In this document: in pieces, positions 28,584 through 56,164 of the stretch
How positions within the stretch are numbered: position 1 is the first letter of the stretch
How the letters are laid out: every line of letters starts with the position of its first letter
NCBI GenBank assembly: GCA_043228905.1
Contig: JBHGNT010000022.1
Location: 5,766,001 to 5,830,000, forward strand
Direction: 5' to 3'
Length of the DNA stretch: 64,000 nt
DNA from: Azolla caroliniana
Lineage: Eukaryota; Plantae; Polypodiophyta
The notes under the pieces: model-generated
What the model saw: only the letters and a program-made list of their open reading frames with translations
Database searches by the model: none
Told to the model about the DNA's origin: nothing
Position numbers and translations under genes: made by a program

Positions 28584-29300
28584 ATGGCTCAAAATAACGA
28601 CCTGATGTCATCCGCTCAAGCGGAAGGAACTCAAGGGAATCCTCCTGGACAAATGTCCATTGAGATGTATTTTTCACAAATAAGCCAATATCTTAGTTTC
28701 ACCGCTCAGTAGATGACCAAACTTCGGCAATCTCAAAGTGCTCTTGAGGCATGTGTCATTAGTTTACAACGTGAGACTAATAAACCTGATGAGTGACAAG
28801 GTGAACCATCGTTTGTTGTTAAGCCATTTACGGGATACAAAAAGGAAAGAACCGAAGAAGCAATCTACACGTGGCTGGGCCGATGGGAGTCTCATTTTGA
28901 GCTCTATCCCACGCCAGATAGTACGAAGATTGCATATGTAGGCTGAGAACTAGGGGGTATGGACGCTGCCTGGTGGCGTGGGTTCCGTACTTTGGGGAAA
29001 TTGCCCGATACCTGGACAAATTTTGTCACAGTTTTCAAGGGCCAATTTCTGCAACCTCCCTCTCGAATCGAGACAACACAAGATTTAATGAACCTCTCTA
29101 GGAGGAAGTTTTCCTCGCTAGAAGATTATGTCCACCATGCTAGAACCCAAATCCAAAAGTCGGGTCTAGAAGGGGACAATAGGTTAATAGCTTGTTTTGT
29201 CAATGGCATCCCCAATTCGGACTATCACTAGATAGTGCACGATAAAGATCCAAAATCCTTCGAAGAGTTTGTTGAAATAGTTCTTCGCTATCAACACACT
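28584..29300 (+). pseudogene. Chromovirus gag, N-terminal part
   Basis: DAAWW...TWTNFVTVFKGQF...SLEDYV...FVNG retrotransposon-Gag pattern; cut by the insertion at 29301. Confidence 0.8.
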
Positions 29301-30074
29301 TGTGAAGGATCTATGTATCAATGGAGTAAGCTCCTCGATGTCGTGGCAGGATTCGGACCGGCGTACACCCTCTTGATGGCGAATCGGGTAGAGATGGCTG
29401 TCGGATACCTCCGAGCCTCACACTCACTTAACGATTAGTAAATGATTGAGCACGATATCTCTCTCACTCTCTTAAGCTCTCTCTCATAGACAATTGGTTA
29501 ATAGATATAGACAATAAGAAGGAAGAGTATGTTTATTAACCCTCTTTTCTAAGAGGTCTAGCACCAACAAGGCGAGAGATTAGTGTTCTCTATCTAAACA
29601 CCTCACTAATCTCTCTTAAGCTCAAAGGTTACAAGAAGGAGGAGAGGAAGCTCTAGCTCTAATCAATAGGAGATCTTAACAAATGGGAGAACCTCCACAA
29701 AGCCACTACTATGTGGTTTATATAGCTTTCATGTTTAGGGCATGTGCCTTTCACACTTGAACGTCTCTTTGCATTCTTTTCCTCTTGCCGTTCCCTCTTC
29801 GTACTACGTCCTTGTTGATGTGCTCTTATTCGTGATTGGTTGTGTTGTTATCCCAACGCTTAACATCCCCCCCAACCTAATGAGTGCACACTCCTGGGTG
29901 CACTGTGGGAGGGGAGCTTCGGGCATCGGGGGTGAGTAGGATTGAGTAGGGGGGTTCTTCGGGGGGCGGGTGGCACCGGAGATGATGGCGAAGACGGCAG
30001 ATGTTAAGTGGTGGTAGCCGGATTTCCTGTAGTTGGTCGGTTGTTGTGGAGAAATCTTTCTTGGGGCCGGTGAG

Positions 30075-33000
30075 CTAGGTGCAGGTGTTGTGGCCAGTGA
30101 AGGGAGAAGGGGGGTTTCGACTAAAGCTTATGTAAGAGGGGGAAAAATGTGTGTCAATCATGGTTTCAAAATCTCGTTTGTAGGTGGCGGGGAGTACGTT
30201 GACGCGGGTCCAAAGGCCGACTAGTTGGCGGCGAGTTGGACCTTTATTCAAATTAAAGGCGAGGCCCCACGCTGGGTGGTTGTGCCGTTGGAAGGGGGGG
30301 GCTTCGTATGGGCCAGAGTCAAGGAGGATGAGTAGAAGTTGTAGAAAGCGAAGGCTCGCTTGAATGTCGGGGTCCGAGACGTCGAGGTATGTACGTAGGA
30401 ATCTTCGCATGACCCGGATCATGCTGGGTTCGGTCGGGGATGTGCGCGGGGGTCGGGGGAACAACGACCAATTGAATTGAAGAGTGGGTAGGCGTGCCTG
30501 GGCGGCTCGAAAGTCGTGCCATGGCCAACGACAAGGGAGGGGAAAAAAGGTGGGCTGGTGCGCAACTCGGGGGGTTGGAGGGCGAGCCATTCACGGAAGG
30601 ATGTGTGTGCGAACCAAGGGAGACGCCACGTGGGTTGGGTGCCGGGTGGTTCGAGGAGGGGGTCGGCGACGGGGTGGTGCCACCCCCGAGTGGGGGTGGG
30701 GTTTGCGGCCGCCCAAGTAGACATCTTATCGCGGTAAACATGGGGGTAAAGGAAGATGTTGACTTGGGGTTCGGAGGCGACTTCGGAGTAATAGGTGTAG
30801 AGGCGAGTGAGGAGTAGGGGGGTCTCGCAGAAGTCGAACTCCCAGGGGATGGGGGCGGCAGATTGATTGTCAAGGTGAGTTTCCCAACCGGTACCGCTTT
30901 CGATGCAAACAAGGGCAGTTTGGAGGCCGTGGGTGAGTTGGTAGCGGTTTGGAGACCGCAACGTTGAATCGGGCGCTCGGGGCGTGGAGTAGAGGAGGTG
31001 TAGTGAATATGGGGGGGGGGGGGGGGGGTAGTTGTTGGTGGAGCATGAGGTGGGCAAGGGGGTGGTTGAAAGGGAGAGCTTTGCGGAGGATGACCTCGGT
31101 GAATGTTCGACCGGGGTGGGTGACGACCCGTGTGTGGAGGGGGAAAGGGTCGAGTGGTGGGGGGGGGAAAGGGGTGGGCCGAGGGGGGTGTGCGAAAGGG
31201 GTTGTCACCGAACATGGGATGTGTGTGGTCGGGGACGTGGTGTTCGCTGAGGTGAGGGTGTGGAGTTGAGTGGTGAGGGGGGGAGGGAGGAGGTGGGCTG
31301 GTAGGTGGGGGAGGTGGTGGGGGTGGTGGGGAGGGAGGGTGAGGGCGAGGAGGCAGCTGGGTGTCGGGTCCATCAGGTGAGTCGTGGTCCCACCCTAGGT
31401 CAATCTCCAGTGGGGGGGAAGGGGGGTGCGGGGGTAGGAGGGCACGAGCACGAGCCTCGTCGAATGTCATGAGTTGATACTCACGAGAGACGTCGAGGTA
31501 TAGGGCTAATTCTGGTATGTCGTCAGCCTCGAGGTCGGTGGGCCAGTTGAATGTGGCGTATTCGATGTTGAATATGTGAGTACGAACCCCGACGTCTTAG
31601 GCGGTTTGCCAAGCGCGTATTAGCCAGAGGAAACCGAAACGGGGTACGGAGGTCGTAGTGTTCTCCAACAGGGTGCGGGTGAGGGTGTTGGCGATGTGGT
31701 GTAAGCGCACCAGTGTTGCGAAGAGGTGGGCTAGCTTGTCTTCGGTGACTTGCATCGTGACATCAAAAGGGTAGGTGAAATAGATCAGGTCGGAGATGTC
31801 TAAGTCGGGGGTGAGGGCGGTGTGAAGGTAGGCCATACCTTCGAGGAACAAAATAGGGAGGTGTTGGGGGAAGAGGTCGCCGGCTGGCGGAGAAGGTTCT
31901 TCGGTGGCTTCTTGATACAACATGAAGAGGGCAAGGGTGTGGTTGTCTTCGGGGAGTACTCGGATGAAGGTCTGCCGGTCTGGGGGTGTGGCGTCGTCAA
32001 AGAATACGCGACGCGTGGTGGCCAACGACCGAAGGACGCACGTGGCTTCGATGAGGAGGGTGCGCGGTGTGCATGGTGCAGTGAAAAGTTTGGAGAGCAG
32101 GGATGTGGAGGTCACGTACTCCGAGAGTGCCTGAATCATATTCGGAGAGCCAGTTGGGGTAAGGAGAGGTGTCTGAATGGTGGAGGGGTCCGTCACGCCG
32201 GGGATGAGGGCATGTTCAAGGGCGGCTTTGGACGTGCGGAGTTTGAGGATGTCCTTTTCGAGGTCGGCACACTGACGACGATGTTTGATGAGGAGACATT
32301 GGTTCTGTTCATTGGCGACTTCGACTTGGTGGACCATGGCGTCACGTTCAACCTTGAGGGTGGTGATCTTGCTCGTGAGTTGGTGAGTTGTGGCCATGGT
32401 GGTGGCCAGGGCCTCAAACCGTTCAGAGAGATCAACCGTCACGGCTGCGAAGCGGGCCTTGGTTAGATGGTGTTGGGTGGTGAGGCGGACATACTCGGCC
32501 GAGAGTTTGGCATGTGTTTGTGTTGCGCGTTCCTGGTTGTGGTGCCAGGTTGTCCGAGCTTGTTGGAACTCGTCAGCGAGTTGTTGGTGTCGGGTTTGCG
32601 TCGCCAGGAGTTCTTGCTTGAGGAGGTCATGGGCGGCCGCTTGGCACGCGTTGGTTTGGAGGGTGCTCCGTACCTTGGCGGCCAATATCTCGTTTCGTGT
32701 AGAGGTCTCATGTTGGTTGGTGGCGGCCTGTTGGGCCTGTGCATGAACTTGAAGTAGACGACGGTTGACGACAGCAGTCATCTTGAGGAGGTCGGCCACC
32801 ATGTCGGTTAAGGGTTTGGAGGGGACGGCGAGGGAGGGGGTAGGGTGGGTAGTAACTGCAGTGAGTGGGGTAGAGCAGGGCACGGAGGTCGGGTGGGGTG
32901 GTGGCGGGGTTGTCATCTGGGCGAGGGTGATGGTGGGTTGAAGGGGAATGGCCGGGGTTGCGGGCGATGGCCGGTCGGGGGTTTCGGTGTCGGGAGCGTT

Positions 33001-34190
33001 GTGGCGGGCGAGTTTATGGGGTCGAAGTTGCGGGGTGTCGTCGATGGTGGTGGGCAGGAAGGGCTAGGTAGTTGCGGCTGGGGTGGGGGGTGAGGATTCG
33101 TGGGGTAGAAGGGTTGGCGAGGTGGGGGCTGGCGGGTTCCGTTGGTTACGCAAGATTGAATCAGTTGTGCAGTTGCGGGTATGCGGAGTCGTGGTTGTGT
33201 TCTGATGTGACACATAGTGGAAGGTAGTGGACAAGGCCTGGATTTCGGTGAGGGTGAACTCATGCGTTTGGAATTCCTTGACACGATTTGTGATATCCTC
33301 AAGGGTGTTGAGGTTAGCTTCGGTTGACACGTGGGTGATCGGGGGTTGTTTGTGCGCCGATGGCCGTTCCTATTCGCCTTGGTGTACCTATCGTAAGAAG
33401 TCGCATTTGGGGAGGCGAAGGCGCTCGGGTTGGCCTGGAATAGTTATCTTGCGAAAGTGTTCTTGGCAGCGTATGAAGGGAGGGGCGGGGGGTCCGATGC
33501 TGAACTTTGCGCACAAGTAGCGGGTGAGGAACCACGCGAAATTGACAATCGATTTGGGCCGTGTGTGCCATTCTCGGACCCGGCAGACAAGCTCATGAGC
33601 CCACTGGACCGGTTGCAGATCATGTGCCCCCTTGAGGTACTCGCCGGTGATACGGGCAATGGCATCGGTAGATGCAGTGTCGCCGATTTGGGCAATTGCG
33701 CTACAACGATCGTGGAGATGGAGAGGGATTTCGGTGTAACGCCAACCTTCGCATTTAGAATATTCGGCGTAGGTGGCAGGAATGATGCCAAGGACAACTC
33801 CAGGGTTCCTCGTGGTGCAGAAGGGGGCGTCATTGAGTGGTAAATGCAGCGTAGCGCAAACGTTGGCCGCAGTGAACTGGAATGCGATGGGGGGAGGGAA
33901 TCCGCAAAAGCTTGCATATCGACATGGCCCGTGTCGGGTTTGTACCTGATGAGGAAACGGTTGACCAACTCGGGTAGGACGCCCCACGGTCCGATCCTGA
34001 GGAAGAACTTGAGGTCAAGTCGTGAGAGGGTGATGAACACGTTGGGTTCGAGGTACTTGAGCTACGTGGCGGCCGTGGGGACCCGGTAAGTACATTGGGT
34101 GTTGTTGAACACCACTGGAATGACTAAGGAACCGCACCCTGTGTCGGGGTAGTACGCGTGGAGGAGTTTGACGAATTGGGGAGACGTCAT
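30075..34190 (-). pseudogene. Accessory (eORF) polyprotein of the 15.7-kb Gypsy: Athila-ORF/plant-transposon-like N-terminus, Pro-rich linkers, coiled coil, unknown C-terminus
   Basis: ATG at 34190 is in frame with ORF 33444-34040 (LPELVNRFLIRY); then 33388-33987 (IVNFAWFL), 33064-33330, and 31597-32916 reading through one TAA into 31470; then 30419-31057 and 30075-30590. Confidence 0.65.
31597..32916 (-). CDS. 439-aa open segment of the accessory ORF (coiled-coil protein of unknown function)
   Basis: Longest uninterrupted non-pol ORF; Q/A/L/E-rich heptad-like region followed by a globular-looking segment. Confidence 0.6.
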   Translation of the reverse strand: MTTPPPPHPTSVPCSTPLTAVTTHPTPSLAVPSKPLTDMVADLLKMTAVVNRRLLQVHAQAQQAATNQHETSTRNEILAAKVRSTLQTNACQAAAHDLLKQELLATQTRHQQLADEFQQARTTWHHNQERATQTHAKLSAEYVRLTTQHHLTKARFAAVTVDLSERFEALATTMATTHQLTSKITTLKVERDAMVHQVEVANEQNQCLLIKHRRQCADLEKDILKLRTSKAALEHALIPGVTDPSTIQTPLLTPTGSPNMIQALSEYVTSTSLLSKLFTAPCTPRTLLIEATCVLRSLATTRRVFFDDATPPDRQTFIRVLPEDNHTLALFMLYQEATEEPSPPAGDLFPQHLPILFLEGMAYLHTALTPDLDISDLIYFTYPFDVTMQVTEDKLAHLFATLVRLHHIANTLTRTLLENTTTSVPRFGFLWLIRAWQTA

Positions 34191-34320: not shown

Positions 34321-35124
34321 GTTCAAGGGATTAGCCCCCTTGAACATGTGTCCTTCGAGGAGTTGGGCTCCTCGGACAATGTGCGGGTTGAGGATGTGGG
34401 CTCCGCGAACCTGTGCGGTTCGAGGAGTTAGGCTCCTCGAACAATGTGTTTTATTTATTATTTTCCTTCAATTCCTGCTATTTAATTTATTTGTATTTTA
34501 TTTACATTACTTTTTTTACAAATTAATCTGAATGTAATTTTCCCTCGTTTCCTAGTTTTGGGAAGGAAGATATTAATGTCTGTTTGGAGGCGCTATCTAT
34601 TTAATAATTATGTCCAATTATCCTACCTCCTCGAACAATGTGCGGTTCGAGGTGTTAGGTTCCTCGAACAATGTGTGGTTCGAGGGGTTAGACTCCTTGC
34701 ACGTGTGTGGTTCGAGGAGTTTGGCTCCCCAAACAATTTGTGGTTCGAGGAGTTTCTAGACTCCTCGCACGTGTGTGGTTTGAGGAGTTAGGCTCCTCGA
34801 ACAATGTGTGGTTCGAGGAGTTGGACTACTTGCACGTGTGTGGTTCGAGGAGTTAGGCTCCACGAACAATGTGTGGTTCAAGGAGTTAGACTCCTCGCAC
34901 CTGTGTGGTTTTAGGAGTTAGGCTCCTCGAACAATGTGTGGTTTGACTCCTTGAACAATGTGTGGTTCGAGGAGTTAGACTCCTCGCACATGTGTGGTTC
35001 GAGGAGTTGGGCTCCTCGAACAATGTGTGGTTCGAGGAGTTAGACTCCTCGCAGATGTGTGGTTCGAGGAGTTAGGCTCCTCGAACAATGTGTGGTTCGA
35101 GGAGTTAGACTCCTCGCACGTGTG
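34321..35124. repeat. Array of ~18 palindromic 32-33-bp hairpin repeats
   Basis: TTCGAGGAG-TTAG(G/A)-CTCCTCG(AA/CA) units joined by CAATGTGTGG or CGTGTGTGG; an AT-rich gap at 34450-34625. Confidence 0.93.
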
Positions 35125-35489
35125 TGACAACGACGTGGCGGTGGCCATGGCCGTTGCAGAGGAGTGAAGTGCAGGTGTGGCGAAACGAGAGGGAAGAGGG
35201 AAGGCCTACCCGAGGCGTGGGTAAGCAGGGCGTGCAGGAGACGAGGTGGCCGCTGGGGCAGGTGACTGATGGAGTAGGAACAGGAACACCGAGGGTGGGG
35301 ATCCAAGGGCACCGAACAGAGAGAGGGGTGAGGGGGTGGAGGGGAGGAATGGTGTGAGGGAGGAGGGAGAAGAGTGCTACAGAGAGGGTAGCGAGAGGGA
35401 AGGGGACAAGAAGAAGGAGAGCTAAAAAAAGAGAGAGGGGGGGGAGGGTAGAGAAAAGAAGAAGAAAGAAGAAGAAGAAGGAAAAAATA

Positions 35490-35567
35490 AACCGTACAAA
35501 ATAACTAAATAAATAAAATAAAAAATAAAAAGAATACTAAAAAATAAAATAAAGAAAATAAATAATG

Positions 35568-35634
<67 letters not shown>

Positions 35635-35724
35635 GAAAATAAAATAATAAAAATCATAAAAATAATAAAAAATAAAATAAAAATAAATAAATAAAATAAA
35701 ATAAAAATGAGAATAATAGACATT

Positions 35725-35756
<32 letters not shown>

Positions 35757-35775
35757 TATTAAAGAAAAACAAAAA
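35490..35775. repeat. A-rich low-complexity tract with (AAT)n microsatellite
   Basis: About 20 AAT copies at 35568-35630. Confidence 0.95.
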
Positions 35776-36183
35776 CCACGACAACGAGGAGACAACCGAA
35801 GGGAACATGAGGCCGGGAGGGCAAGGAGTAATTGATGAAAAAGATTCGGATACCGACGATAATTAAGAAACTGCGAGGTGGCTAAGGTTGGCATATGGGT
35901 GGCAGGGCTGAACAGGGGTCCACGGGGGATGTGGTGAGGGATTGGGGAAATTAAGAGCTTTTGGGAAACCTTGAGGGGGCGAATGTGGGGGGAGTGTCAC
36001 TCGGGTATTGTGTGAGGTTCTGGGCCCGTGACTTTTAAGGACCCAGACCTGTGGCATGTTTGTTAAGGGGATGGGGAGGATTTGTGAAGCCTTTCTATGG
36101 GGTGTTCGGCCTCTCAGTTGTTTAGGCTTGTTGATTCCTATGGCTTTAACCTGGGCAGGATACTAGACTGATGTGTGTGATTT

Positions 36184-36770
36184 TCAAGTGTCCCATGCGG
36201 GCGTGGTATGATTGTGACTGGGGAGCCGGCTTCGTTTCGGGACCCAAAAGCTAGTGGCGCCTTTGTGCCAACCTTGTGTGGTTGTGAGTGTTTTTTTGAC
36301 TCGCCAAATGGCAGGTTCTCCACAGCACTGTCCGTCTGCAAAAACATCGTGAACGTTCACCCATTCCTGTGGTTTGGGTGTCTGCGTTCTAACATTAGCG
36401 TCGCGCTGGTCCTGGATGGCCGATGGGTGTTGGCATTTTGTTTGGTTGAGAGACTCCGCACCTTGGGGTTCATTGAGGTCCCATGTAGGGGTGGTCCGAT
36501 TGCGAGTGAGGAGCCGGTTTCGTTTCGGGACCCAGAAGCTAGTGGCGCCATTGTGCCAACCTTGTGCGGTTGTGAGTATTTTTCTGACTCGCCACACACC
36601 ACGTTCTCCGCAGCGTGGGCCGTCAGCGAAAATTGCCTGGACTTTCACCCATTCCCGTGGTTTGGGTGTCTGTGTTCTAATGTTAGTGTCGCGTTGGGCA
36701 TGGACGGCTAGTGGGTGTTGGTGTGCTGTTTGTTTGGGTAACTCCACGCTTTGGGGATCATCGAAGTCAG
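36184..36770 (-). repeat. 288-bp (96-codon) in-frame duplication after the second protease
   Basis: GACCC..AAGCTAGTGGCGCC at 36241 and 36529; ORF 36184-37074 repeats QHP.A...QRD.N.RTQTPKP.EWV...WRV.K...QGWH.GATSFWVPKR. Confidence 0.9.
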
Positions 36771-36812
36771 CGAGATGTGATTCAAGTGTTGTTGCAATGA
36801 GGTCCTTAGACT

Positions 36813-39299
36813 TCAGTCCATCTCCTGTTTGGAAGGAGACAATGTGTTTGCTGGGAGTACCCGAACTTGGATTGAGTGCGCACTGTATTCTGTCTTGATG
36901 ATACACACGAAAGTTCCCAGGCAGCATGATGTGGACCCATCGAAGCCACGGAAGTTGTCGTTGCACACTTCGAGGTCTGGGCAACCTAGACATCTCCATG
37001 TTTCGAAGGAGAAAAGGGTTAGTGATGCTCCTGTGTCGATTACCGCCGTCAAAGGCATGTTGTCGACGCAACATCGTAGTTGTATTGTTCCGTCATTAGA
37101 GTTGGCCGCCTTAGCCATGGCTGCCAGATGGGTGTGTCCTTGTCGCTTCAATTTCGCTTGCGTATTGCATAGGTCGGTTTCGAGCTGGGCTATTCGGCCT
37201 TCGGAGGCCTTAAGTTTGGCCTCTACCTCTCGTTGCCGAGCCGTGAATAGAGCCTCGAGTGTGAGGGGTCCATAGTAACATTTGAGCTTGCTCCCATTGA
37301 TGAACCCGGGGATGTCAAAACCTTCGAGGGTGCGTAGGTGACATGCTCCTGTCTTGGTAATCTTTGAAACCACATACGAGCCTTCACCCCGTAACTTAAG
37401 CTTCTTCTTGTGTTGTTGAGAGGAGAATTTGAGGGCCATGTCACCTTCAACGAGGTCTTTGTTCTTGATTTTATTGTCGTGCCACACCTTTCTATTGGCT
37501 TTCTCTACCAAGAGTGCCTGGAATGCGAGAAGGCGGGGGTACCCATCCCATTGTTCTTGTACGGCGATCCTGAGGCTGGGGACAAGGAACTCAATGGGTA
37601 ATACTACTTCTTGCCTGTGCACTAGTTTGAATGGTGTGTGGTGAGTTGTGACTTTGTAGGAAGTACGGAAAACCCATAATGCTGCTTGGAGTTTGGTGCT
37701 CCAATCAGACCGTGAGGCGGCGATTATCTTTGTGAGCACTGCACATAACACCTTATTTGTGCTTTCTGCTTGTCCGTTGCATCGAGGGTAATAAGGAGAA
37801 CTTTTGCAGTGTGTCACCATAAATTTGCCTAGTAAATGTGCTATCACTTCGTTGAGGAAATGTGAGCCTTGGTCACTAATGATTTCGAGCGGACATCCAA
37901 ACCATACTATGACATTTTCATATAGGAATTTGGCGGTACTACGCGCGTCGGCGTTAACGCAAGCTTTAGGTTCGACCCACTTGGTAGCGTAGTCGATGGC
38001 GGTTATTATGTATTGGTTGAGGTTGGAAGCTGGCCTGATTGGGCCGATAAAGTTGATACCCCATTTCTCGAATGGTTGCCATGCCACCACCGAGTTTAAT
38101 GTATTGAAATCCGCTTTTAGCGGGTGTTTGAAACGTTGGCACTCGTCACAACGGCGTACGTACTCGTATGTGTCTTTGAAGAGTGTTGGCCACCATAGGC
38201 TAGACTGGAGGATCTTACGTGCAGTGGTCTCGTGATTGAAATGACCACTTCCGCTCCCGCAATGAGCTTGTTCGAGGGTGGCGATGACGTCGTGGTCTGT
38301 TACACACCTCCGAAGTAGATCGTCGTTACCCTGACAGTACAAGTTGCCACGGAGTATCGTGAAGGGGCCACATTTCTTTAACAAGACACACACGTGTGCC
38401 CGTGGTAGTTGTTTTAGGAAGGACGCTCCTTCAGTTAGGACGTGAATGATGTCTGATGCCCATGCTGGTATGGTGTCGATCGTGAATAATGCTGCATCTG
38501 GTGTTTCATCGTCAACCCTAGTGGCTTCTTCTCCGTTGGGTATCTGGGAGAAATGATCGGCGAGTACATGGTCTTTCCCTTTTCTCACCTCTACCTTGAA
38601 GTCGAACTCGAGTAACGTTACGATCCATCGTGAGATGCGTCCGGTGGCGTGAGTTTTGTTTACTAAGTAGAGTAGGGCTTGATGATCTACAAAAAACGAG
38701 AACCGGGACGCCAAAAGGTAGTGGCGGAATTTCTTTACGCTGTAAACCATGGCCAAAGCCTCCCGTTCTGTCGTGGAGTAATTTTGTTCCACGGCGTTCA
38801 GTTGGCGACTAGCAAAGGTGACCAGTAGGTCGAGTGCCCCTTCATCGGGTTGAGCTAGCACTGCACCAATCGCGAAGGCAAAAGCATCGGTGTGAACGTG
38901 GAATTCTTTGGTCCAATCTGGAGGCCGAAGGATGGGGGCCTTAGTTAGGCACTCTTTCAAGAGCTTGAAGGAGTGTGTGCATTCTTCTGTCCACACGAAC
39001 TGCTTTAATAGGGTGTAGAGCGGTCTAGCCTTGTCTGCGAACAACTTAATGAAGCGACTATAGTAACCCGCGTATCCCATGAACCCTTGTAGTTGTTTCT
39101 CATTTGTGAGGGGTGGCATGTCGCGGATGAGTTTTACTTTTGCCTCATTGGTCGAGATCCTGTGGCGGGACATGACGTGCCCTAATATTAATCCATGCTT
39201 GACCCAGAACTGACACTTGAGTGGGTTGAGAGAGAGTTGATAGGTCTTGCATTTTTTGAACGTCAAACGGAGTAGCCCCAAGGGGTCATGCCATTTCAA
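36813..39299 (-). CDS. Pol segment: RT C-terminus, RNase H, integrase, coiled coil and a second aspartic protease (828 aa open)
   Basis: FHVHTDA, NYSTTEREAL, HHCC (H..G.GH..C..C), KWGINFIGP, SDQGSHF, NGQAE, then VIDTGAS...FRGFDG..CLG. Confidence 0.9.
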   Translation of the reverse strand: MKWHDPLGLLRLTFKKCKTYQLSLNPLKCQFWVKHGLILGHVMSRHRISTNEAKVKLIRDMPPLTNEKQLQGFMGYAGYYSRFIKLFADKARPLYTLLKQFVWTEECTHSFKLLKECLTKAPILRPPDWTKEFHVHTDAFAFAIGAVLAQPDEGALDLLVTFASRQLNAVEQNYSTTEREALAMVYSVKKFRHYLLASRFSFFVDHQALLYLVNKTHATGRISRWIVTLLEFDFKVEVRKGKDHVLADHFSQIPNGEEATRVDDETPDAALFTIDTIPAWASDIIHVLTEGASFLKQLPRAHVCVLLKKCGPFTILRGNLYCQGNDDLLRRCVTDHDVIATLEQAHCGSGSGHFNHETTARKILQSSLWWPTLFKDTYEYVRRCDECQRFKHPLKADFNTLNSVVAWQPFEKWGINFIGPIRPASNLNQYIITAIDYATKWVEPKACVNADARSTAKFLYENVIVWFGCPLEIISDQGSHFLNEVIAHLLGKFMVTHCKSSPYYPRCNGQAESTNKVLCAVLTKIIAASRSDWSTKLQAALWVFRTSYKVTTHHTPFKLVHRQEVVLPIEFLVPSLRIAVQEQWDGYPRLLAFQALLVEKANRKVWHDNKIKNKDLVEGDMALKFSSQQHKKKLKLRGEGSYVVSKITKTGACHLRTLEGFDIPGFINGSKLKCYYGPLTLEALFTARQREVEAKLKASEGRIAQLETDLCNTQAKLKRQGHTHLAAMAKAANSNDGTIQLRCCVDNMPLTAVIDTGASLTLFSFETWRCLGCPDLEVCNDNFRGFDGSTSCCLGTFVCIIKTEYSAHSIQVRVLPANTLSPSKQEMD

Positions 39300-42200
39300 A
39301 TTTCAGCATAAGTCGTCAACATAAGACTCCACTCCTTGTCGTAACCTTGTTGCGAAGATATGGTCCGCCGCTCTTTGGTAGGTGCTTAAGGCGCTCGTGA
39401 GTCCGAAAGGTATCTGTTTATACGCGAACGTACCAAATTCGGTGGCGAAGGTTGTCTTGTGTTGATCCTCAGGGACCACCGAGATTTGGTTGTACTCGGA
39501 GAACCTGTCGATGAAGCTATAAGCTTCTGCTCTCGTGGTTCTTTCGAGTAGATGCTCGATGTAGGGTATCGGGTAGTTGTCCTTGATAGTGGCTTCGTTA
39601 ACTTGGCGGTAGTCGACACATATGCGGATCTAGCTGTTTTTCTTCTGGACGACTACAATCGGGGAGACCCAAGTAGTTTTGTTGATCGGGTAGATAATGC
39701 CTACAACCAACATTTTGTTGATTTCGGCTTTTACTCCTTGGGCGTAGTTAGGGTTCATTGGGCGTGGCCTTTGCCGGATTTGGCGGGCGTCAGCTCGCAT
39801 GGGGATACTATGGGTGACGACCTCGGCTGGGACTCCCTTCATGTCGACGTACGACCATGCAAACACGTCGCTAAATTCCGTGAGGAGGGTGATCAAGGAC
39901 GTCTCCTCGTCGGACTGGAGATTTGCAGCTATGAATACCGGTTTGGAGTCTATCCCTTTCCCGAGGTTGATTTCTTTCACCCTTGCCAGTCCATCATAGA
40001 CTTCTCCTAGGCCTTGGGGGGTGCATTGTGGTCTCTTACAAGCCACTGCCCTATTCCCTTGTTCATAGAGTTTGAAATGCTCTGGGAAGTTCACTTCCAT
40101 CGTAGTCTTCTGAGTGGTCGTGGTGTCACCTGGACGTGTGACTTGTTGTACCAGTTCTTCGTCCTTTATGTCTACTTCTTTTCGCCGGGGTCCCAGGGTG
40201 GTGACGTTGAAGCAAGAGATTGTTTCTCCGTCCTCTTCACAACACTTTGTACCTATAGGGTACATTGCGTCGGTTGTGGTGAGAGCATGTACCCAATTCA
40301 TCTCTGACGTCTCGGAAGTGACAGATTGGTCGTCTCTCTCACGTACGTTCCCCTCTTTGGAACTGGCGAGTCTTTGGGGAAACGGTTGGCCTCTGGTCAA
40401 GAGTTGAACTGTCTTTGTGGGGTTGCACGCTAGGAGGTTGGTCTCGAACTCAGTGGTTTCTGACCAATCGTCTACGAGAGGGCTGCCTTCTTGTTCATGC
40501 ACTTTTTGTGTGTATGGTTTGATGCGGAAGGTTTTGTTGTCTTTACGCATATAGATTATATCGTTCCCGAAATCCATTACCAGACGGCTTATACGTAGGA
40601 ATGGTCTTCCTAGTAAGCACTCATAGGCCACATGGTTGGACGATCTTGTGACGACGAAGGTGAGATGGAACTCCATTCTGTGGATAGTGAAGTGATGCGC
40701 AGGGATCATGCCTTCTAGCCTTTGGATGGACCCATCTGCCATTCGTAGTTTGACATCTGAAGGAAGCATTCTTGGGCTCCCCCACTTACACCAACATTTG
40801 TAACTGACGATACTTACCCCTGCTCCGGTGTCAATGATTGCGTCACACGTCTTACCATTGACGCAGATTGCCAGAGTGAAACTAGTATCGTCACTCTCAA
40901 AGTGAGCTTCGTGGACATCGACTGGCGGTCCTTCGGGTTGTTTGAGGACCGTGGACGTGTGAGGAATGTGGGTGTGTATCCTTTCACCATATCCTGCTGA
41001 TAGGCCACCATTGAGGCGTCAGAGGACGTCATACAATGGTTGAATGTCGAGTTTGAGTAGTTCTTCGAGTGTGAACTCTATTTCCTTGGCAAGTAGAGGT
41101 TGTAGCAGGGGGTTGTCCGTGACAAAGGTGCCAGTGTAGCTTTGCACTTCGCGTAATGTGAGTCGCAATCTTAAATTTTAAGATTTGCTGGAGTAGGGCT
41201 GTGTTGACCTCTTTGATCGGGGTAGGATGGCAAGTGGGGGTGTCGGTTAGTGTGACGACGGGGGGAGGTGGGGGGTTTACCCATTCTTCTAGTTGGTCGA
41301 AGTTTAAGCTCGGGAGACTAAGTGATTTTTCAAACTTTTCGTGGCGTATGAGCTTGATGTATTCTTCTACCGTTTGTTTCTCAGCTATTGGGTTTGGGTA
41401 TTATGCCGCTAGGTGTGCCGATAGTTCTTGATTTGGATTGACAGGTAATGTTTCTATGTCTCCCTCCGGTTCTTGATCTTGTTTTGAGGTCTGCATGGAA
41501 TTATTCTTTCTAGATTTTCGTCTCTTACATGTGGTCGCGGGGAGACCTTGATCTTGGTATTTTAAATTGTGCGCTACTCGTTGAGCCCGTGTGATGACAT
41601 TGGCACCGATTGTGGATGGTACAATGGACAACAGATTTGTGCCGACCCTTTTCTTCTTTTTTGGGCAATCAGGTACTAAGTGTTCCTTACCACACCCTAG
41701 GCATGATGCTTCTATTTGGAACCATTCGATAAGGTCCTGCGACTGTTGGGTGAGACCTTGCGTTGGTGGTTGTGGGGGCGTGTCGAGTGGGAGGTGTCGT
41801 GGTCGTTGGGCCATCCGGTTGTAGTATTCATGTTTGGTTGGGCACTCGCTAACCATATGTGGGCCTTGGCAGTTGAAGCATTTCAATTCTTACCTCCTTA
41901 GACCATTGTTGTTGCGGTATCCCATAGGGGGTCCACGTTGTTCCCCTCTCAGGACGTGCACTAGTATTTGGTCACCTTCAAAGTCCACGAAGTGGGACAA
42001 CACCTCTTCTTCAATGCCATACTCCCGGTACGAGTCTTCATATTTGGGGGTGCTCACCTCGACCTGGGTTTGGTTATCTGTGGTATATTCCAGTTCGGCG
42101 AGGCGGGCGCCGATGCACGATAGTGGGGGTTGTTGAGGGAGTATTGTTGGTAGTGGTGGGCGGCTAAGTGGTGGAGGTGAGCGTGGGTGTTCCACCATTG

Positions 42201-43669
42201 GCATTTGGCCGTACCTTCCAGTGGGGGCTTGCCAACAGTTCTCTTGCGTATGCATCATGAAAGCTTTGCACCACTTACAATATTGATGTCGTCGTTGATG
42301 GAGGAGGGGACACTCATGTCCCGTGTGGTGGCCGTGGCATACTAGGCACCTTACATTTTCTCATTGGGCGTATGCTTGGGGTCTTTCTATACGGGGTGTT
42401 CGCGGTGGTGTGGGTAGAGTAGGGGTGGGGTTTGAGGATTTCTCGCGGTTGTTCGTAGGTGCTTGAGTGGGTATCAGTAACCCACACATTGAATCTTCAA
42501 AGATCATCACTACTGTGTAGTCTTCAGCGACCGATCGACACATCCTGACAATCAGGAAATTTTGGAGTGTCGGATTGAACAACCCATTAATGAAACGGCT
42601 CATCAACTTGTCATATGACATCTTGTCGCTTGAACTACAACGATGATGCAGGCTTTTCATGCGATGTATGTAGTCCCTGACCGTTTCGTTCGCTTCTTGT
42701 TTGAGGGCGAAAAGTTGGTCAATCGGGTTCCATTTATTCCCTCGGCGAGCGAAGTTTATCAAGAAATCCTCGATGACATACTCGAAATCGGCGGCGATGT
42801 CTTCATTCAAGGTTCTAAACCAAATTCCGGCTTGGTCATCAAGTGTAAGTCCAAACGCAGCTGGCTACCTTGGTGATCTCTGTGAGGGGTTCATAAGCGC
42901 GACAAATCTGTTTGAACCTCTCGACGTGATCATAGGCATCACCGAAACCGAGGAAACGGGGTACTAGTTTAGAAATGGAAGCACTCTTCCCACTGTCATT
43001 TGTGAGGTTTCTCGGATGGTTTGTGGGTGCTTGCTCTTTTTCCATCAATGCTACAAGAGTTTGGATGGATTGTAGCGCTAGTGCGAGTTCAACGTTTGGA
43101 GGTGTAGGGGTAGCTTGGTTAGGTGTAGGGAATGTGCCCATGCGTGGTGGTGTCGGGTGTCATTGTGTGCGGGCTTTGTTCGGGCTATCGCCTGTTGTGC
43201 TTGAATGTGGTACAGGGCTGTGCTCCTAACCTCGGCGGTGCATGTGCGACGATGTTTCTAGGAGGTGAAGTTTTTGTTGCACTCGTGCGAATCTATCCTT
43301 CCTTTCTGCCAAAGGGGCTTTGATATCTCGAGTGGTGCTTTCCGGTTGTCCTCCTTTCGCTAGCTGTACCATCCATACATTGATTTCGTGTTCTATCACC
43401 CATAACTCTTGCGCTGCGTCTCGTATGTGTTGCTCTACACTGAGTGGGTCTGCCATTGGGCTCTCTTGTAGTGGGGGTGTGTTGAGAGGTGCTTTAGTTC
43501 CTGGGCTCGATGGAAGGTTCATGTTTGGTAGCATCCCTGGAGTTAGCCACCCTCTGTGGTACTGAGTCGGGTTAGGTGGGATGACATCGTGGGTTTGGTT
43601 GGTTTGTGTGGACTCCTCTTGGCGTGCGGGTCGGGTTTTGAACATCTCTATCCATGAGGATCCGGCCAT
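39300..43669 (-). pseudogene. Gag, protease and RT of the 15.7-kb Gypsy (disrupted)
   Basis: Gag LKQEANETVRDYIHR...FINGL; CCHC motifs; PR AIIDTGAG at 40818-40845 with LLGRPFL; RT DVFAWSY..WVSPIVVV. Confidence 0.9.
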
Positions 43670-43694
43670 GTTTTCTAGTCAAGCTTTTATAGGT

Positions 43695-44010
43695 TCGTCA
43701 AAGGATGAATCTTCGTTGAAGGATGAATATTCGTCGAAGGTTGAATCTTCGTCGAAGGGTGAATCTTTGTTGAAGGTTGGATCTTCGTCGAAGGGTGAAT
43801 CTTTGTTGAAGGTTGGATCTTCGTCGAAGGTTGGATCTGCGAGGTGGATTGAATCTTCGTCGAAGGATGAATCTTCGTCGAAGGTTAAATCTTCATTGAA
43901 GGGTGAATCTTCGTCGAAGGTTGAATCTGCAAGGTGGGTTGAATCTCCGTCGAAGGATGAATCTCCATCGAAGGATGAATCTCCGTCGAAGGTTGAATCT
44001 TCGTCGAAGT
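43695..44010. repeat. 18-bp palindromic tandem repeat (~17 copies) just upstream of gag
   Basis: GAATCTTCGTCGAAGG(A/T)T units; core CTTCG-T-CGAAG. Confidence 0.92.
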
Positions 44011-44149
44011 TTGCGTCGGAAATTCAAACTTTTTGGCGCCAACGGTCGTTTCGTGACCCGTGGGATGATCGTAAGCCGCGAGACTCGCGGTGGTTACGCT
44101 TGCCCTGTAACGGCTCAATCTCCACAATGTTTAGTGTTAACCGAGCGAA

Positions 44150-44368: not shown

Positions 44369-45051
44369 TGGTGGTTCTCTTGCGATTTCTTCCTTCGTTA
44401 AGTCGTTTGCCTCCGAGTTTTTGACTACTCGAAAATAGGCTTCAAGCGTTGGTCGTATCCCCGGTAACGGCGCCAAATAGATGTGAAGGATCTATGTATC
44501 GATGGAGTAACCTCCTCGATGTCGTGGCGGGATTCGGACTGGTGTATACCCTCTTGATGGCGAATCGGGCAGAGATGGTTGTCGGATACCTCCGAGCCTC
44601 ACACTCACTTAACGATTAGTAAATGATTGAGCACGATATCTCTCTCACTCTCTCAAGCTCTCTCTCATAGACAATAGGTTAATAGATATAAACAATAAGA
44701 AGGAAGAGTATGTTTATTAACCCTCTTTGCTAAGAGGTCTAGCACCAACAAGGAGAGAGATTAGTGTTCTCTAACTAAACATCTCACTAATCTCTCTTAA
44801 TCTCAAAGGTTACAAGAAGGAGGAGAGGAAGCTCTAGCTCTAATCAATAGGAGATCTTAACAAATGGGAGAACCTCCACAAAGCCACTACTATGTGCTTT
44901 ATATAGCTTTCACGTTTAGGGCATGGGCCTTTCACACTTGAACGTCTCTTTGCTTTCTTTTCCTCTTGCCATTTCCTCTTCGTACTACGTCCTTGTTGAT
45001 GCGCTCTTATTCATGACTGGTTGTGTTGTTATCCCAGTGCTTAACAACACT

Positions 45052-48000: not shown

Positions 48001-49391
48001 AACCACCACATCCTCGAAGGAATACTTCCACATTGCTAACGGTCTGCTCTACCGTAATGGGAATGTTTGTGTTCCAAATTTGCCTGAGGTAAAAAAGAGA
48101 ATTCTTTTTGAAGGCCATGATGCACCCTCAGCAGGGCTTCCTGGAATACATCGTACACTCGTTCTCATCTCCACTCAATTTTATTGGCCTAAGATGCGTC
48201 CTGACATACATAGCTATGTGACTAAATTTCACCAATGTCAGGTTAACAAAGCCAAGCGACTTAAAGCCGCAGGACTTTTACATCCCTTGGACATTCCCAA
48301 TAATAAGTGGGAAAGTATATCCATGGATTTTATTGTTATCCTTCCTCGCACCCAAAAAGGCCATGATGCCATCTGGGTTGTGGTTGATAGACTAACTAAA
48401 ATGGCCAGATTTATTGCTACTAAAACCATGGTAATAGCTCCTGAATTGGCTTACCAATATGTTGACGAGTTATTTCGTTTTTATGGGTTACCGATGGATA
48501 TCATGAGTGATCGAGATCCGAAATTTACTAGTGACTTCTGGACGCAAGTCTTTAAGAAGTTAGAAACTACGTTGAGCATGAGCTCCACGGATCATCCTCA
48601 ATCCAATGGACAAACAGAACGAGTAAATCAAATTATTGAGGACATGCTTGGAGCATACGTTCGTGCAAAACCAACAAAATGGGAACATTATCTCCCAATT
48701 TTGGAGTTTTCTTATAACAGCTCCAAGCATACGTCGACGGGATATAGTCCTTTTATGTTGATGTATGGTTTTCAGCCACGAGCCCCGATTGATGTTAATA
48801 TACATCATGATGAGTTGCGAAGTACGCAAAACTTTCTTCGGGATATGCAAGATATGTTGCATATTGCACGAGATAATATAAAAACAGCTCAAGATAGAGT
48901 GTGTTTTTATGCCGATCATCATAGGCAACCTCGTGTATTCAACCCTGGACAGTAGGTATTTTTACGTGTACCTCAAAATTCTAAGACATTGTCTAAGGGT
49001 AAGTGCGCTAAGTTAGCCCCATGGTTTTATGAACCTTTTACAGTCCTCAAACGCATTGGGTCATCAACCTATTGTCTCTCTCTTCCCAATGGTGTTGGAA
49101 TTCATCCGGTCTTTCATGTGAGTCGTATAAAAGAACTTCTAGGTTCTGACGACAATACAGTTACAACTGAAACTCTGGTTACTTCTGAAGATGTATCTTC
49201 TAAACCACATGTACCAGAAAGAATTCTTGATATTAAAACAAAAAAATTATGTACTACAGAAATCCGAGAATTTAAAATAAAATGGATGGATAAATCAATA
49301 AAAGATGCCACATGGGAACGCGAAAGTACTCTAAGAACTAACTTCCCTAACTTTCCATTGCAAGAGTGCAATGTTTTAAAGAGGGGGAGTA
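45052..49391 (+). pseudogene. Chromovirus gag end, PR, RT, RNH, INT and chromodomain (disrupted)
   Basis: ORFs 44923-45591, 45774-46019, 46988-47293 ([16 protein letters not shown]), 47332-47634, 47882-48955, 48989-49405. Confidence 0.93.
46327..46963 (+). repeat. Solo LTR inserted in the chromovirus RT, with a 4-bp TSD
   Basis: TGTCGCG...CACGACA; flanks ACGC/TCGC; removing it plus 4 bp restores KTAFRTRYGHYEF. Confidence 0.9.
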
Positions 49392-49821
49392 TGTTACGGG
49401 CATGACCATATAATATCCCGTCGTCAGAATTTACCGTAGTATTGTATACACGTGGATAAGTGTGAGGGTTAAACAAGAGTGTAAAGAAGGGGAGGATTAC
49501 TTTTAATCCTCGGGATTGAGACAACCCATTAGGCCAAGTGTGAACATGGCTGGGGGCCTTGGGTATTGCTATAAATAAGAGGCCTAGCTACCCTCATTTG
49601 ATCATCTTGTTTACTACGTCGACACTCTGTCTTGTGGTGGGTCAACTCTTGTAGTGAGCGCGCCGGCACCAGGTACGACTCGACGCCACAACGTGGTATG
49701 GGACGCCGATTGAGGCTCAACTCCGTCTCGATCCATTCGCTCGGGGGTGGATCGGCACCCTTCTTTCTCTCTCTCCTTTCTATCTAGATCTATATTCTAT
49801 CCTTATCTAATGCTTACATTA

Positions 49822-55159: not shown

Positions 55160-55259
55160 CATTAGTCTATGTCTCTAAAACTCACTATTTCTATTTTCTA
55201 GCCCCAAAATTCACATGCAATATATTCTTGGAAAGACCTTTGAGTTAGCTTTCTTATGC

Positions 55260-56164
55260 ATCACACCATACACATCTATATGGGTCTTTCCTTTTTGGCC
55301 CTCTACGACTCATATTAGCTAACGAAACCACTTTGAATTTTTGTGCCAATTCTTCAATGACAGAGTTCTCCATCGCTCTTTCGATCGGCTCGCTTTACTT
55401 TGTCATCTCAATTGCTATTGGAGCCTTCCTTCTTTGGACTACCGGGCCCGCCATGTCCGAATCATCTAGCCATCGACAATGTTTGTCAAATAGATCACAT
55501 GATCTTCTTACCGCAACCCAATCCGTTATGAGAGACCATTGGGTTGTGCTTCGTCCTCTAATAGACTACCTAGTTCTTGTCTATCTTTTGCATCCACTGC
55601 CTTTAAGAAGTACAAAACTTTATCTCCATCAAGAAGTGTTTGGTCGGTTCTCGGGAGACGGTTGTACATTTAGTCAAATTCAGTGTACACTCCCCATGTG
55701 TTCATGTTCTTCCCCTTCTTCTCGATCCACTTCATCAATGTATGATGAGTCATCCTCGACGCATTTTCAAGCATATATTCAGCCAAAAGCGCCCTTTCAA
55801 ATCCCAACCATGGGATTTGGGTGGCTTGAATCTCCCTTATACGGCCTTGTAACCCAATTGCTACGACATGCTTGAAGCTTGATATTTGCTTCTCTTCGAT
55901 GACATCACGTTGTTGCATCTCCGTCTTGTATGTAACGAGAAAATCCGTAATGTTTCTTCCACCAAATTGGCATGTTATCTCAACAGTTCGGTCGATGGCC
56001 TTGTCTAAGCTTGCATCATTATCTCAAGCCCTCATCAAATGCTCGACAATAGCCACCAACTTTGCCACTTCGTTAGCTTGGGTGTTTGTTGAAGAAGCCA
56101 TCTTCTAACCTTCTATTTCAAGCACTTGATCCTGCCTCTTCACGTCGGGTTCACCACTTTATTA
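55260..56164 (-). mobile_element. Internally deleted Gypsy unit: tRNA-Trp PBS plus gag 5' part
   Basis: PBS TGGTGAACCCGACGTG at 56141-56156 (complement of the plant tRNA-Trp 3' end); 55260-56118 is nearly identical to 62507-63360. Confidence 0.85.

Follow-up and report, generated by a model that had tools for sequence, protein, structure and literature searches.

In Ty3/gypsy retrotransposons (Metaviridae) the protease is canonically located between Gag and the reverse transcriptase (RT), and we know of no retrovirus or LTR retrotransposon with two proteases. Extra enzymatic domains do occur in retroviral pol, e.g., the dUTPase of some lentiviruses and betaretroviruses. In plant LTR retrotransposons the catalogued pol add-ons are only aRH, CHD and CHDCR (PMC6317226). 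Chromoviruses carry a chromodomain, an extra selected module in frame on the C-terminus of the integrase, and the Tat lineage provides a precedent in which an enzymatic domain of pol is doubled, by the archaeal-type RNase H (aRH), throughout the lineage. Tat elements are also long, and additional ORFs and tandem repeats lie in the interval from pol to the 3' LTR (PMC6317226; PMC11963269). Among host genes, the single-copy DDI1-like ones encode a dimeric retropepsin fold that has a helical segment in front of it.

Here we analyse a Ty3/gypsy element in which, ca. 1200 residues past the canonical protease (PR1), a second retropepsin-like domain (PR2) follows the integrase. PR2 shares with the canonical protease its fold, its signature motifs and its best Pfam families (PF13975, PF00077), and differs from it in this position and in carrying the motif hh-G-x-D/x-W instead of the LLGRPF of PR1. 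Like the chromodomain, the addition is a selected module in frame on the integrase C-terminus (with a W-rich module in the place of the targeting domain), but it contains an enzyme-type fold; and as in Tat an enzymatic domain is doubled, although the duplicated activity is here, by prediction, the protease and not the RNase H. The retroviral dUTPase, also a lineage-specific domain inside Gag-Pro-Pol, has a different fold and activity. Pfam detected no Chromo domain in the window ORFs, the pieces from sister copies or the polyprotein of an intact sister (contig L011). Neither the window nor L011 gave an aRH match, RT-linked RNase H families alone being recognised in them, and the UBL and UBA domains that flank DDI1 had no Pfam match in the window ORFs or L011. 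We consider it probable that PR2 is a genuine second retropepsin domain and the middle part of a conserved extension of pol, seen in the window in a dead copy. An earlier note on this DNA had supposed the architecture to be undescribed, and we also found no description of it, nor of any second protease in an LTR retrotransposon, in the literature covered, which was open-access full text only, so that this absence is no proof of novelty.

The element in the Azolla window

The window, i.e., the whole stretch of 64,000 nucleotides of Azolla caroliniana DNA that was analysed, contains a 15.7 kb LTR retrotransposon on the minus strand (Table 1). Its LTRs (TG..CA), its primer binding site and polypurine tract, the order PR-RT-RH-INT and a 5-bp target duplication (ACACT on the plus strand, at 45047-45051 and 29296-29300) place it in Ty3/gypsy. 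The primer binding site may resemble the 3' end of tRNA-Asp. It is not of the tRNA-Met type, which is reported by REXdb for most chromoviruses (PMC6317226). The gag region is colinear with the Gag of the intact ORF in L011 and holds a Pfam Retrotrans_gag match (E 8.7e-11, at 42364-42810) and CCHC-like knuckles within 41404-41886. PR1, which the earlier note had rightly placed ahead of RT, matches Pfam gag-asp_proteas over profile positions 3-91 of 92 (38.4 bits, E 2e-9), and the rest of pol gives matches to a fragment of RVT_1, RT_RNaseH_2, RT_RNaseH, Integrase_H2C2 and rve. With its LTRs ca. 5% diverged, its gag-pol fragmented and PR2 deleted in part, the window copy is a dead member of its family. 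A long stretch with further ORFs separates pol from the 3' LTR.

Table 1. Features of the element, in the 5' to 3' order of its sense strand
Feature	Position in the window	Strand	Remarks
5' LTR (TG..CA)	44482..45046	-	ca. 95% identical to 29301-29865
Primer binding site, sense TGGCGCCGTTACCGGGGA	44458..44475	-	seen in the sequence, 6 nt past the 5' LTR
gag region, several ORFs in the window copy	41401..43669	-	Retrotrans_gag domain and zinc knuckles
PR1, canonical protease	40593..40874	-	D-T-G at 40832-40824; LLGRPFL
RT (fragmented), RNase H, integrase zinc finger, core and SH3-like C-terminal domain	37266..40100	-
Helical (coiled-coil-like) linker	37099..37265	-	translation; directly after the integrase, same frame
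PR2, N-terminal three quarters of the retropepsin domain	36853..37098	-	D-T-G-A at 37037-37026
Junction of the 73-nt frameshifting deletion, private to the window copy	36852..36853	-	sister comparison
Out-of-frame tail (..ANTLSPSKQEMD) and stop codon of the 828-aa ORF	36813..36851	-
Last PR2 strands (..PSKHIVSFQTGDG..) and linker	36690..36852	-	second frame, ORF 36184-37074
W-rich module, two copies from a 288-bp tandem duplication	36187..36689	-	stop at 36184-36186
Polypurine tract, sense GGTTGGGGGGGA	29866..29877	-	seen in the sequence, ahead of the 3' LTR
3' LTR	29301..29865	-	repeat search, paired with 44482-45046

A second retropepsin in frame behind the integrase

An ORF of 828 aa (36813-39299, minus strand) encodes the RNase H, the integrase zinc finger and the rve core and, past the SH3-like end of the integrase (..LKCYYGP, ca. 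37266), runs without a stop through the helical stretch into the retropepsin-like piece. The earlier note had described this continuous frame, and both D-T-G triplets are where it had located them, that of PR2 (37037-37029) in the context AVIDTGAS (37046-37023). It was mistaken about the end of the ORF, where it had read EMD and the stop as plausibly a GMDW motif decayed by a TGG>TGA change. The last 12 codons are in fact out-of-frame sequence, and the hh-G-x-D-W motif is gone because of the frameshifting 73-nt deletion: the site measures 75 nt in all the sister contigs that cover it vs. 2 nt in the window. The missing nucleotides, which in the sisters encode ..PKVLYTPCLLGLDWCHISECLLS.., took with them the C-terminal quarter of PR2, with this motif, a helix and some of the predicted dimer interface, and Logan contigs of two organisms have loose ends at 36852 and 36855. 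The original frame resumes in a second ORF that matches the related sequences P0001, L004 and L007 over the last PR2 strands and linker and then runs through both copies of a tandem repeat (36190-36765, 288-bp unit), itself coding, of which the sisters have a single module. In other words, a complete domain, with the hh-G-x-x motif, the helix and the C-terminal strand, is missing from the window and present in all the sisters covering the site. A profile search, which the earlier note had proposed as a check, was divided in its outcome: with Pfam gag-asp_proteas the window piece alone reaches 20.3 bits (E 8.7e-4), short of the gathering score of 28.2, and the PR2 of L011 exceeds this score (30.1 bits), that of L003 scoring 28.1. 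PR2 had no tblastn match among plasmids, a collection without bearing on such an element.

Conservation in sister copies and diverged families

All 20 sister contigs (L001-L009, L011-L021) were colinear with the element, and in all of them the integrase C-terminus, the helix, PR2 and the W-rich module lay in one frame wherever they were covered. The comparison enlarges the feature originally noticed, in which PR2 was real, but only the middle of an overlooked extension of ca. 430 aa that consists of a coiled-coil-like helix, PR2, a variable linker and one to three W-rich modules. L011 carries both proteases in one ORF of 2457 aa without interruption, and L012, from another sample, is 99.8% identical to it over the 430 aa compared. 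Four further contigs (L015, L016, L017 and L021) represent other subfamilies (70-72% amino acid identity) and are stop-free across the stretch that each covers. At larger distances, P0149 is an uninterrupted polyprotein of 3270 aa with PR1 at residues 1302-1395 and PR2 at 2878-2975, the latter scoring 29.2 bits with Pfam RVP (gathering score 20.7), and the same domain order was found in P0027, P0121/L010 and P0143, the last being NCBI MCO5559123.1 from the fern Adiantum nelumboides. The extension is present in at least four diverged families, between which PR2 is only 17-27% identical. The long intact ORFs were read from metagenome contigs (20-57x coverage) into which the assembler may have collapsed many copies, and an ORF of this kind does not necessarily represent one genomic copy. 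On another contig (L022) no LTR pair was visible. One putative RNA run matched the element with no more than a 59-nt piece. The sequences indicate that Gag, PR1, RT, RNase H, integrase, helix, PR2 and W-rich module make up one giant polyprotein in the intact members, and that possession of the extension characterises a deep Ty3/gypsy lineage.

The helix, PR2 and W-rich module might still be a separate accessory protein, translated from an RNA that is spliced or initiated internally, in which case their common frame with the integrase would be incidental; the long stretch after pol and its further ORFs could be seen in this light. However, the passage from integrase to helix is free of stops and frame changes in every diverged family (the 2457-aa and 3270-aa ORFs included), no start codon is conserved at this junction, and the junction has a conserved motif of its own (..Y-x-(G/E/D)-P-L-(T/S)-x-E..), all of which makes a separate protein very improbable.

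Selection on the extension

Over the full PR2, dN/dS between five lineages (NG86) had a median of 0.25 (range 0.17-0.43), compared to 1.04 and 1.05 when the frame was shifted either way, and bootstraps of the true frame never reached 1. The intact copies gave 0.20-0.26 for PR2 and 0.23 for the integrase C-terminus. The helical linker was similarly constrained (0.15-0.19 in the true frame vs. 0.85 and 1.48 in the shifted ones), as was the W-rich module (ca. 0.2-0.3), and the linker between PR2 and this module varied more freely (ca. 0.5-1.0). Close pairs were near 1, which is what decay after insertion would lead one to expect. From these substitution patterns, PR2 appears to be under purifying selection about as strong as that on the integrase C-terminal domain. 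The earlier note had proposed to test for a conserved fusion with dN/dS below 1, and both are borne out, the fusion in the sister contigs and the low dN/dS in the comparisons of lineages and of intact copies.

A repeat search of the window brought up the outer pair of LTRs, internal tandem arrays and nothing else, which agrees with the lack of flanking LTRs or target duplications that had been noticed before; an independent nested element was rejected, as PR2 has neither LTRs nor a target duplication to itself. If only the window copy were available, its truncated domain, the sub-threshold Pfam score and the downstream repeats could suggest a fragment of the gag-protease region of another element that came to lie in frame behind the integrase by chance. 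The sister copies already refute this: a domain that is present in every one of them and in several diverged families, under purifying selection, within giant uninterrupted ORFs and with no termini of its own leaves such an accident practically no probability. The three findings that answer the refuting conditions named in the earlier note (PR2 in all sisters, selection as on the integrase C-terminus, no own termini) all fall on the side of its proposal.

Fold and predicted dimer

In spite of its divergence, PR2 keeps D-T/S-G-A, the flap glycine and hh-G-x-x-W. The active-site sequence is DTGA in L001, L003, L004, L008, L011 and L015-17 and DSGA in P0149, P0027, P0143, P0015 and P0016, with D, G and A invariant in the alignment among families; decayed copies have C>T or G>A changes at the catalytic site (DIG, DTR). 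An AlphaFold2 model of the helix and PR2 of L003 had a mean pLDDT of 78.8 (88-97 in the core, ca. 95 in the helix, residues 2-30), and its best Foldseek match in the PDB was the RVP domain of human DDI1 (3s8i, E 1.4e-7), the other leading matches being the proteases of FIV, M-PMV, EIAV and HIV (E 1e-7 to 1e-4 for all of these, DDI1 included). PR2 is therefore predicted to fold as a retropepsin, as the earlier note had anticipated. DDI1 structures are the top matches of the model (3s8i, 4rgh, 7d66), and both have a helical segment before the retropepsin fold, which in PR2 is dimeric by prediction. However, the two are only 15-23% identical, PR2 lies inside the polyprotein of a high-copy LTR element and not in a single-copy host gene, and with PR2 the DDI1-type Pfam family Asp_protease scores far below the retrotransposon types.

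A homodimer of PR2 predicted with ESMFold2 scored 0.65 vs. 0.00 for the best of three controls, a value that may be recall of solved retropepsin dimers. The dimer mark was reached by 21 of 30 microbial proteins solved as same-chain pairs and none of 23 solved as single chains; for eukaryotes it was 17 of 29 and none of 30. The runs shared at least 49% of contacts, with a partner pLDDT of at least 72, and the symmetric interface was made of the D66/T67/G68 contact, the flap and the N- and C-terminal strands, the helix remaining outside. By this model, PR2 may form a canonical retropepsin dimer. It is also conceivable that PR1 and PR2 pair, within or between polyproteins, into a pepsin-like asymmetric site that would let a single-ORF Gag-Pol activate itself without a high local concentration; in the intact members both are in one uninterrupted ORF, and they are homologous beyond the domain proper. 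Such a pairing seems highly unlikely to us, given the confident symmetric homodimer predicted for PR2 alone and the ca. 1200 residues that separate the two domains. We know of no natural retropepsin heterodimer.

Origin of PR2

PR1 and PR2 are homologous over the protease and ca. 50 upstream residues with 24-27% identity (even the window piece finds its own PR1 by BLASTP, E 1e-9, 27% over 91 aa), and PR2 evolves faster. As the earlier note had supposed from the window alone, PR2 is not a recent copy of PR1. It would be old, arising before the split of at least four families, either by an ancient duplication of the segment comprising the pre-protease region and the protease or by capture from another retroelement. 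In a protease tree, built without REXdb or DDI1 sequences, the PR2 sequences are grouped on the same side of a weakly supported split (54/50), and the tree cannot decide between duplication and capture.

What the second protease may do

The W-rich module of the extension is as constrained as PR2. Its consensus is ..EWVxVxxxFADGxxCGExxxWRVxKxLTTxQGWHxGATSFWVPKRxRL.., for which Pfam had no match and a look-up in the ESM Atlas gave nothing usable. Profile matches in the PDB were to artificial alphaRep proteins only (E 5e-4 or weaker) and were taken as chance, and a fold of the PR2 tail, linker and module from a 7-row alignment was unusable (pLDDT 36).

It is tempting to see PR2 as a second processing protease that homodimerises and serves the C-terminal polyprotein, a tentative reading to which we would give somewhat less than an even chance. 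When two polyproteins meet, PR2 would dimerise as any retropepsin does and would cut the C-terminal part, e.g., freeing the integrase, PR2 itself and the W-rich module, with PR1 handling Gag, PR and RT. The earlier note had thought instead of a captured protease that might process the accessory protein or host targets. A more ambitious version, possible but more doubtful, is that a deep plant lineage (ferns at least) keeps two catalytically active retropepsins that divide the labour, PR1 maturing Gag, PR and RT, and the helix with PR2 controlling the release or exposure of a W-rich module that directs integration or nuclear entry.

The motifs themselves leave room for another role, as the "fireman's grip" of retropepsins (D-T/S-G) is structural as well as catalytic; since it is also required for the dimer fold, its conservation is no proof of catalysis. 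PR2 could then be mainly a non-catalytic module for multimerisation, a scaffold that stays on the integrase with its helix and dimeric fold, joins the protomers and presents the W-rich module as a signal for targeting or import. The symmetric predicted dimer would suit it, as would a W-rich module that is conserved across families, under constraint equal to that of PR2, and located at the extreme C-terminus, where other Ty3/gypsy lineages such as the chromoviruses have their targeting domains. We still find this unlikely, because all the protease signature motifs have been retained in spite of the very deep divergence between families, and to our knowledge no integrase assembles through a retropepsin fold.

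Implications

A second protease kept under selection by a whole lineage would be a third kind of pol add-on, beside chromodomains and a second RNase H, and, if truly so, the first extra protease domain among those that define lineages. It raises the question of why an element would have two proteases, be it for staged maturation, for integrase assembly or to regulate a targeting peptide. In practice, software that classifies elements on the assumption of one protease each will divide these elements wrongly, give them the wrong orientation or report nested insertions, and this matters in genomes of the size found in ferns, where the PR2 family is highly repeated. If the reading with two active proteases is true, it would add a new regulatory layer to the maturation of LTR retrotransposons.

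The second protease in the window and in sister copies

On its minus strand, the window contains a complete LTR retrotransposon (see the feature table), and within it lies PR2, a retropepsin-like domain behind integrase, in addition to PR1, the protease between Gag and RT. The integrase in the 828-aa ORF closes with the usual SH3-like ..GSKLKCYYGP and, as the earlier note had read it, no stop precedes the helical stretch and the retropepsin-like piece, which carries AVIDTGAS. That note had also seen no LTR or target duplication flanking PR2, and a repeat search of the window likewise found nothing resembling separate termini around it, as a nested element would have. Against gag-asp_proteas, the window PR2 piece taken alone scores 20.3 bits, under the gathering score of 28.2.

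Features of the window element and other repeats of the window, with domain limits in the uninterrupted sister copy L011
Feature	Window position	L011 (aa)	Remarks
LTR pair	29301-29865 and 44482-45046		minus-strand element; ~95% identical; TG..CA ends
Target duplication			ACACT (+ strand), 5 bp; flanks both LTRs
PBS			6 nt from 5' LTR
18-nt tandem array	43658-44057		between PBS and gag
Gag		148-237	fragmented in window; first in downstream order; Retrotrans_gag, zinc knuckles
PR1	40832-40824 (D-T-G)	810-902	after gag; gag-asp_proteas 38.4 bits
RT		1215-1372	fragmented in window; after PR1
RNase H		1434-1563	after RT
Integrase		1671-2023	after RNase H; zinc finger, then rve core
828-aa ORF	36813-39299		integrase end, helical stretch, retropepsin-like piece
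Helix		2024-2085	coiled-coil-like
PR2	37037-37029 (D-T-G)	about 2086-2200	then linker
Resumed ORF	36184-37074		original frame
W-module		2250-2305	tryptophan-rich; then proline-rich tail
288-bp duplication	36190-36765		tandem, coding
A/T-rich stretch	35400-35900		low complexity; after pol
Hairpin-repeat arrays	34332-35191		also L011:8211-8496
Coiled-coil-like ORF	31597-32916		minus; 439 aa; between pol and 3' LTR
Proline-rich ORF	30319-31470		minus; between pol and 3' LTR
Polypurine tract			G-rich; directly before 3' LTR
Other family, ~4 kb or more	2-4341, 14685-17962, 50537-54355		three diverged copies
300-bp repeat pair	49822-50413 and 54540-55147		4.7 kb apart

The element family is highly repeated: over a 3.4-kb stretch, 2357-2911 contig pieces matched with at least 80% identity in two organisms, A and B. 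All 20 sister contigs (L001-L009, L011-L021) were colinear and, where covered, kept a single frame across the integrase C-terminus, helix, PR2, linker and W-module, so that PR2 is not missing from sister copies and the integrase-PR2 fusion is a feature of the family. The stops and frameshifts that the contigs do contain are scattered, each confined to its own copy. The 8.9 kb contig L011 (20x coverage) holds a single uninterrupted ORF of 2457 aa, to which L012, from a different sample, is 99.8% identical across the 430 aa compared. Four contigs from other subfamilies (L015, L016, L017 and L021; 70-72% aa identity) are stop-free across the stretch that each covers. One sister (L001:1-1322) is an internally deleted derivative, in which the gag zinc-knuckle region (~window 41821-41561) runs directly into the C-terminus of integrase (from window 37376 on); it retains helix, PR2 and W-module and has lost PR1, RT, RNase H and the integrase core.

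Outside the domains, the array between PBS and gag has at least 15 copies of its unit, and a comparable 18/36-nt array is found in L012 (1015-1437). The hairpin-forming short-repeat arrays (TTCGAGGAG..CTCCTCGAA type) follow pol and the A/T-rich stretch; as they are present in both the window and L011, they are also a family feature. At window 30075-33987 are further minus-strand ORFs, the coiled-coil-like one and the proline-rich one in a G+C-rich block (0.58-0.59), neither with a Pfam match at threshold. The rest of the window (1-28000, 49000-64000) consists of other repeated elements.

A deletion in the window copy

The 150-aa PR2 piece matched 20 proteins in an exhaustive HMMER search; the close ones are all small ORFs from metagenome contigs, in which PR2 goes on as ..RVLPPKVLYTPCLLGLDWCHISKCLLSPSKNMVSFQTENG.. 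to a complete retropepsin. When nine contigs were aligned with the window at the DNA level, all copies that span the site proved to have 75 nt there against 2 nt in the window, and the window copy therefore carries a 73-nt frame-shifting deletion; loose ends of Logan contigs from the two organisms at 36852 and 36855 agree with it. The terminal EMD*, previously taken as a plausible decayed GMDW motif (TGG>TGA), is thus out-of-frame sequence, and that explanation has to be abandoned. The original frame resumes in an ORF with the last PR2 strands, the linker and the tandem duplication, and the missing PR2 residues include part of the predicted dimer interface. The duplication doubles the W-module, which is single in close sisters and present as two or three diverged copies in distant families. 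At 36 of the 40 listed best-supported variant positions (window 35900-39300), A or T in the window stands against G or C in most other copies of organisms A and B, a pattern consistent with C-to-T decay in a copy that is methylated and silenced.

Selection on PR2

Nei-Gojobori dN/dS was obtained for five lineages and for intact copies of three subfamilies. PR2 is constrained as much as the integrase C-terminus, far from the neutral decay that the earlier note had set against its reading, and codon bootstraps never got up to 1 (seven pairs). The values near 1 in very close pairs are as expected with neutral decay after insertion.

dN/dS along the integrase C-terminus and the pol extension
Region	Five lineages	Five lineages, shifted frames	Intact copies
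Integrase C-terminus	0.16		0.23
Helix	0.19	0.85 and 1.48	0.13-0.42
Full PR2	median 0.25 (0.17-0.43)	1.04 and 1.05	0.20-0.26
Linker	0.56		0.5-1.0
W-module	0.30		about 0.2

Predicted fold and possible role

All folded and searched sequences were natural translations of contigs. The model of a 181-aa piece of sister L003 (helix plus complete PR2; 24-row alignment) had a mean pLDDT of 78.8, with 88-97 in the protease core and a confident helix at residues 2-30. Against the PDB, Foldseek returned retropepsins only: human DDI1 RVP (3s8i, E 1.4e-7), further DDI1 RVP domains, and FIV, M-PMV, EIAV and HIV proteases. By sequence and modelled fold, PR2 has all the features of an active retropepsin.

Predicted as two copies, PR2 scored 0.65 against 0.00 for the best of 3 controls, passing a mark that 21 of 30 one-chain pairs of known structure reach, as against 0 of 23 proteins of known single-chain structure (17/29 and 0/30 on eukaryotes); at least 49% of contacts agreed between runs, with pLDDT of at least 72. 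The interface (symmetric D66/T67/G68 contact, flap and terminal strands; helix outside) matches the canonical dimer of retropepsins; the score may thus reproduce solved structures of that kind, and the prediction supports a PR2 homodimer rather than showing it.

PR1 and PR2 lie within the same polyprotein. The likeliest role, which we put forward tentatively, is that PR2 would dimerise upon polyprotein assembly and cut the C-terminal part, releasing or exposing integrase and W-module. The predicted dimer could also belong to a scaffold that stays on integrase, which we consider unlikely. Pairing of PR1 with PR2 as a heterodimer is less probable still, and so is a separately expressed PR2. Processing of the downstream accessory protein, which the earlier note had proposed, would be a further candidate role; contigs of the other families are too short to reveal such a gene.

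Origin and wider lineage

PR2 and the ~50 residues before it align to the same element's PR1 and upstream spacer at 24-27% identity (in the window copy, ungapped over 91 aa, 27%, E 1e-9). A tree built from 28 protease domains places every PR2 on one side and, on the other, PR1 together with other retroelement proteases (split support 54/50). A recent copy of PR1, already doubted in the earlier note for its divergence, is excluded; PR2 may have had a single old origin, by either duplication or capture.

Among RT-RH-integrase relatives at 39-55% identity, several have long tails past integrase (P0074/P0149, P0027, P0121 on contig L010, and P0143, annotated as "hypothetical protein" in the fern Adiantum nelumboides, NCBI MCO5559123.1). 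In each tail, a helix rich in K, E and R and a D-S-G-A retropepsin bearing an hh-G-x-x-W motif are accompanied by one to three W-modules, roughly (K/R)xW(V/I)PKxxLxAQG(Y/W)xxGxxxxW(V/I/L)PK. P0149 is an uninterrupted polyprotein of 3270 aa with PR1 at 1302-1395 and PR2 at 2878-2975, the latter matching RVP at 29.2 bits (gathering score 20.7); L010 begins within PR1 (..ILGRPFM..) and has integrase, helix, PR2 and two W-module-like pieces at its end. Ferns, conifers and liverworts supply the best named RT/integrase relatives. Judging from these sequences, the PR2 extension is older than the family of the window element.

The ORF of P0149 has ~500 residues ahead of the Gag capsid domain (residues 1-500, L022:2150-3650). 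P0147, a 97-aa NCBI entry named [quoted passage not shown], falls into the same 90% cluster as the fern-type retrotransposon polyprotein P0074; contamination of a bacterial assembly with plant DNA probably explains it. Five of the HMMER matches to the 150-aa piece (P0004, P0009, P0010, P0013, P0017) have two or three tandem retropepsin-like domains (P0004 at 356, 1033 and 1700; P0017 at 311, 557 and 685) in a context unrelated to the window element.

As extra domains of the polyprotein, only aRH, CHD and CHDCR are listed in the REXdb survey (PMC6317226), and a second protease is mentioned neither in the review on additional ORFs (PMC7264820) nor in the one on Retand elements (PMC11963269). Targeted full-text searches of the open-access literature found no description of one in LTR retrotransposons and, within that literature, the architecture appears to be undescribed; the earlier note likewise knew of no description. 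The elements described here represent a lineage of LTR retrotransposons whose pol carries an apparently new extension under selection.
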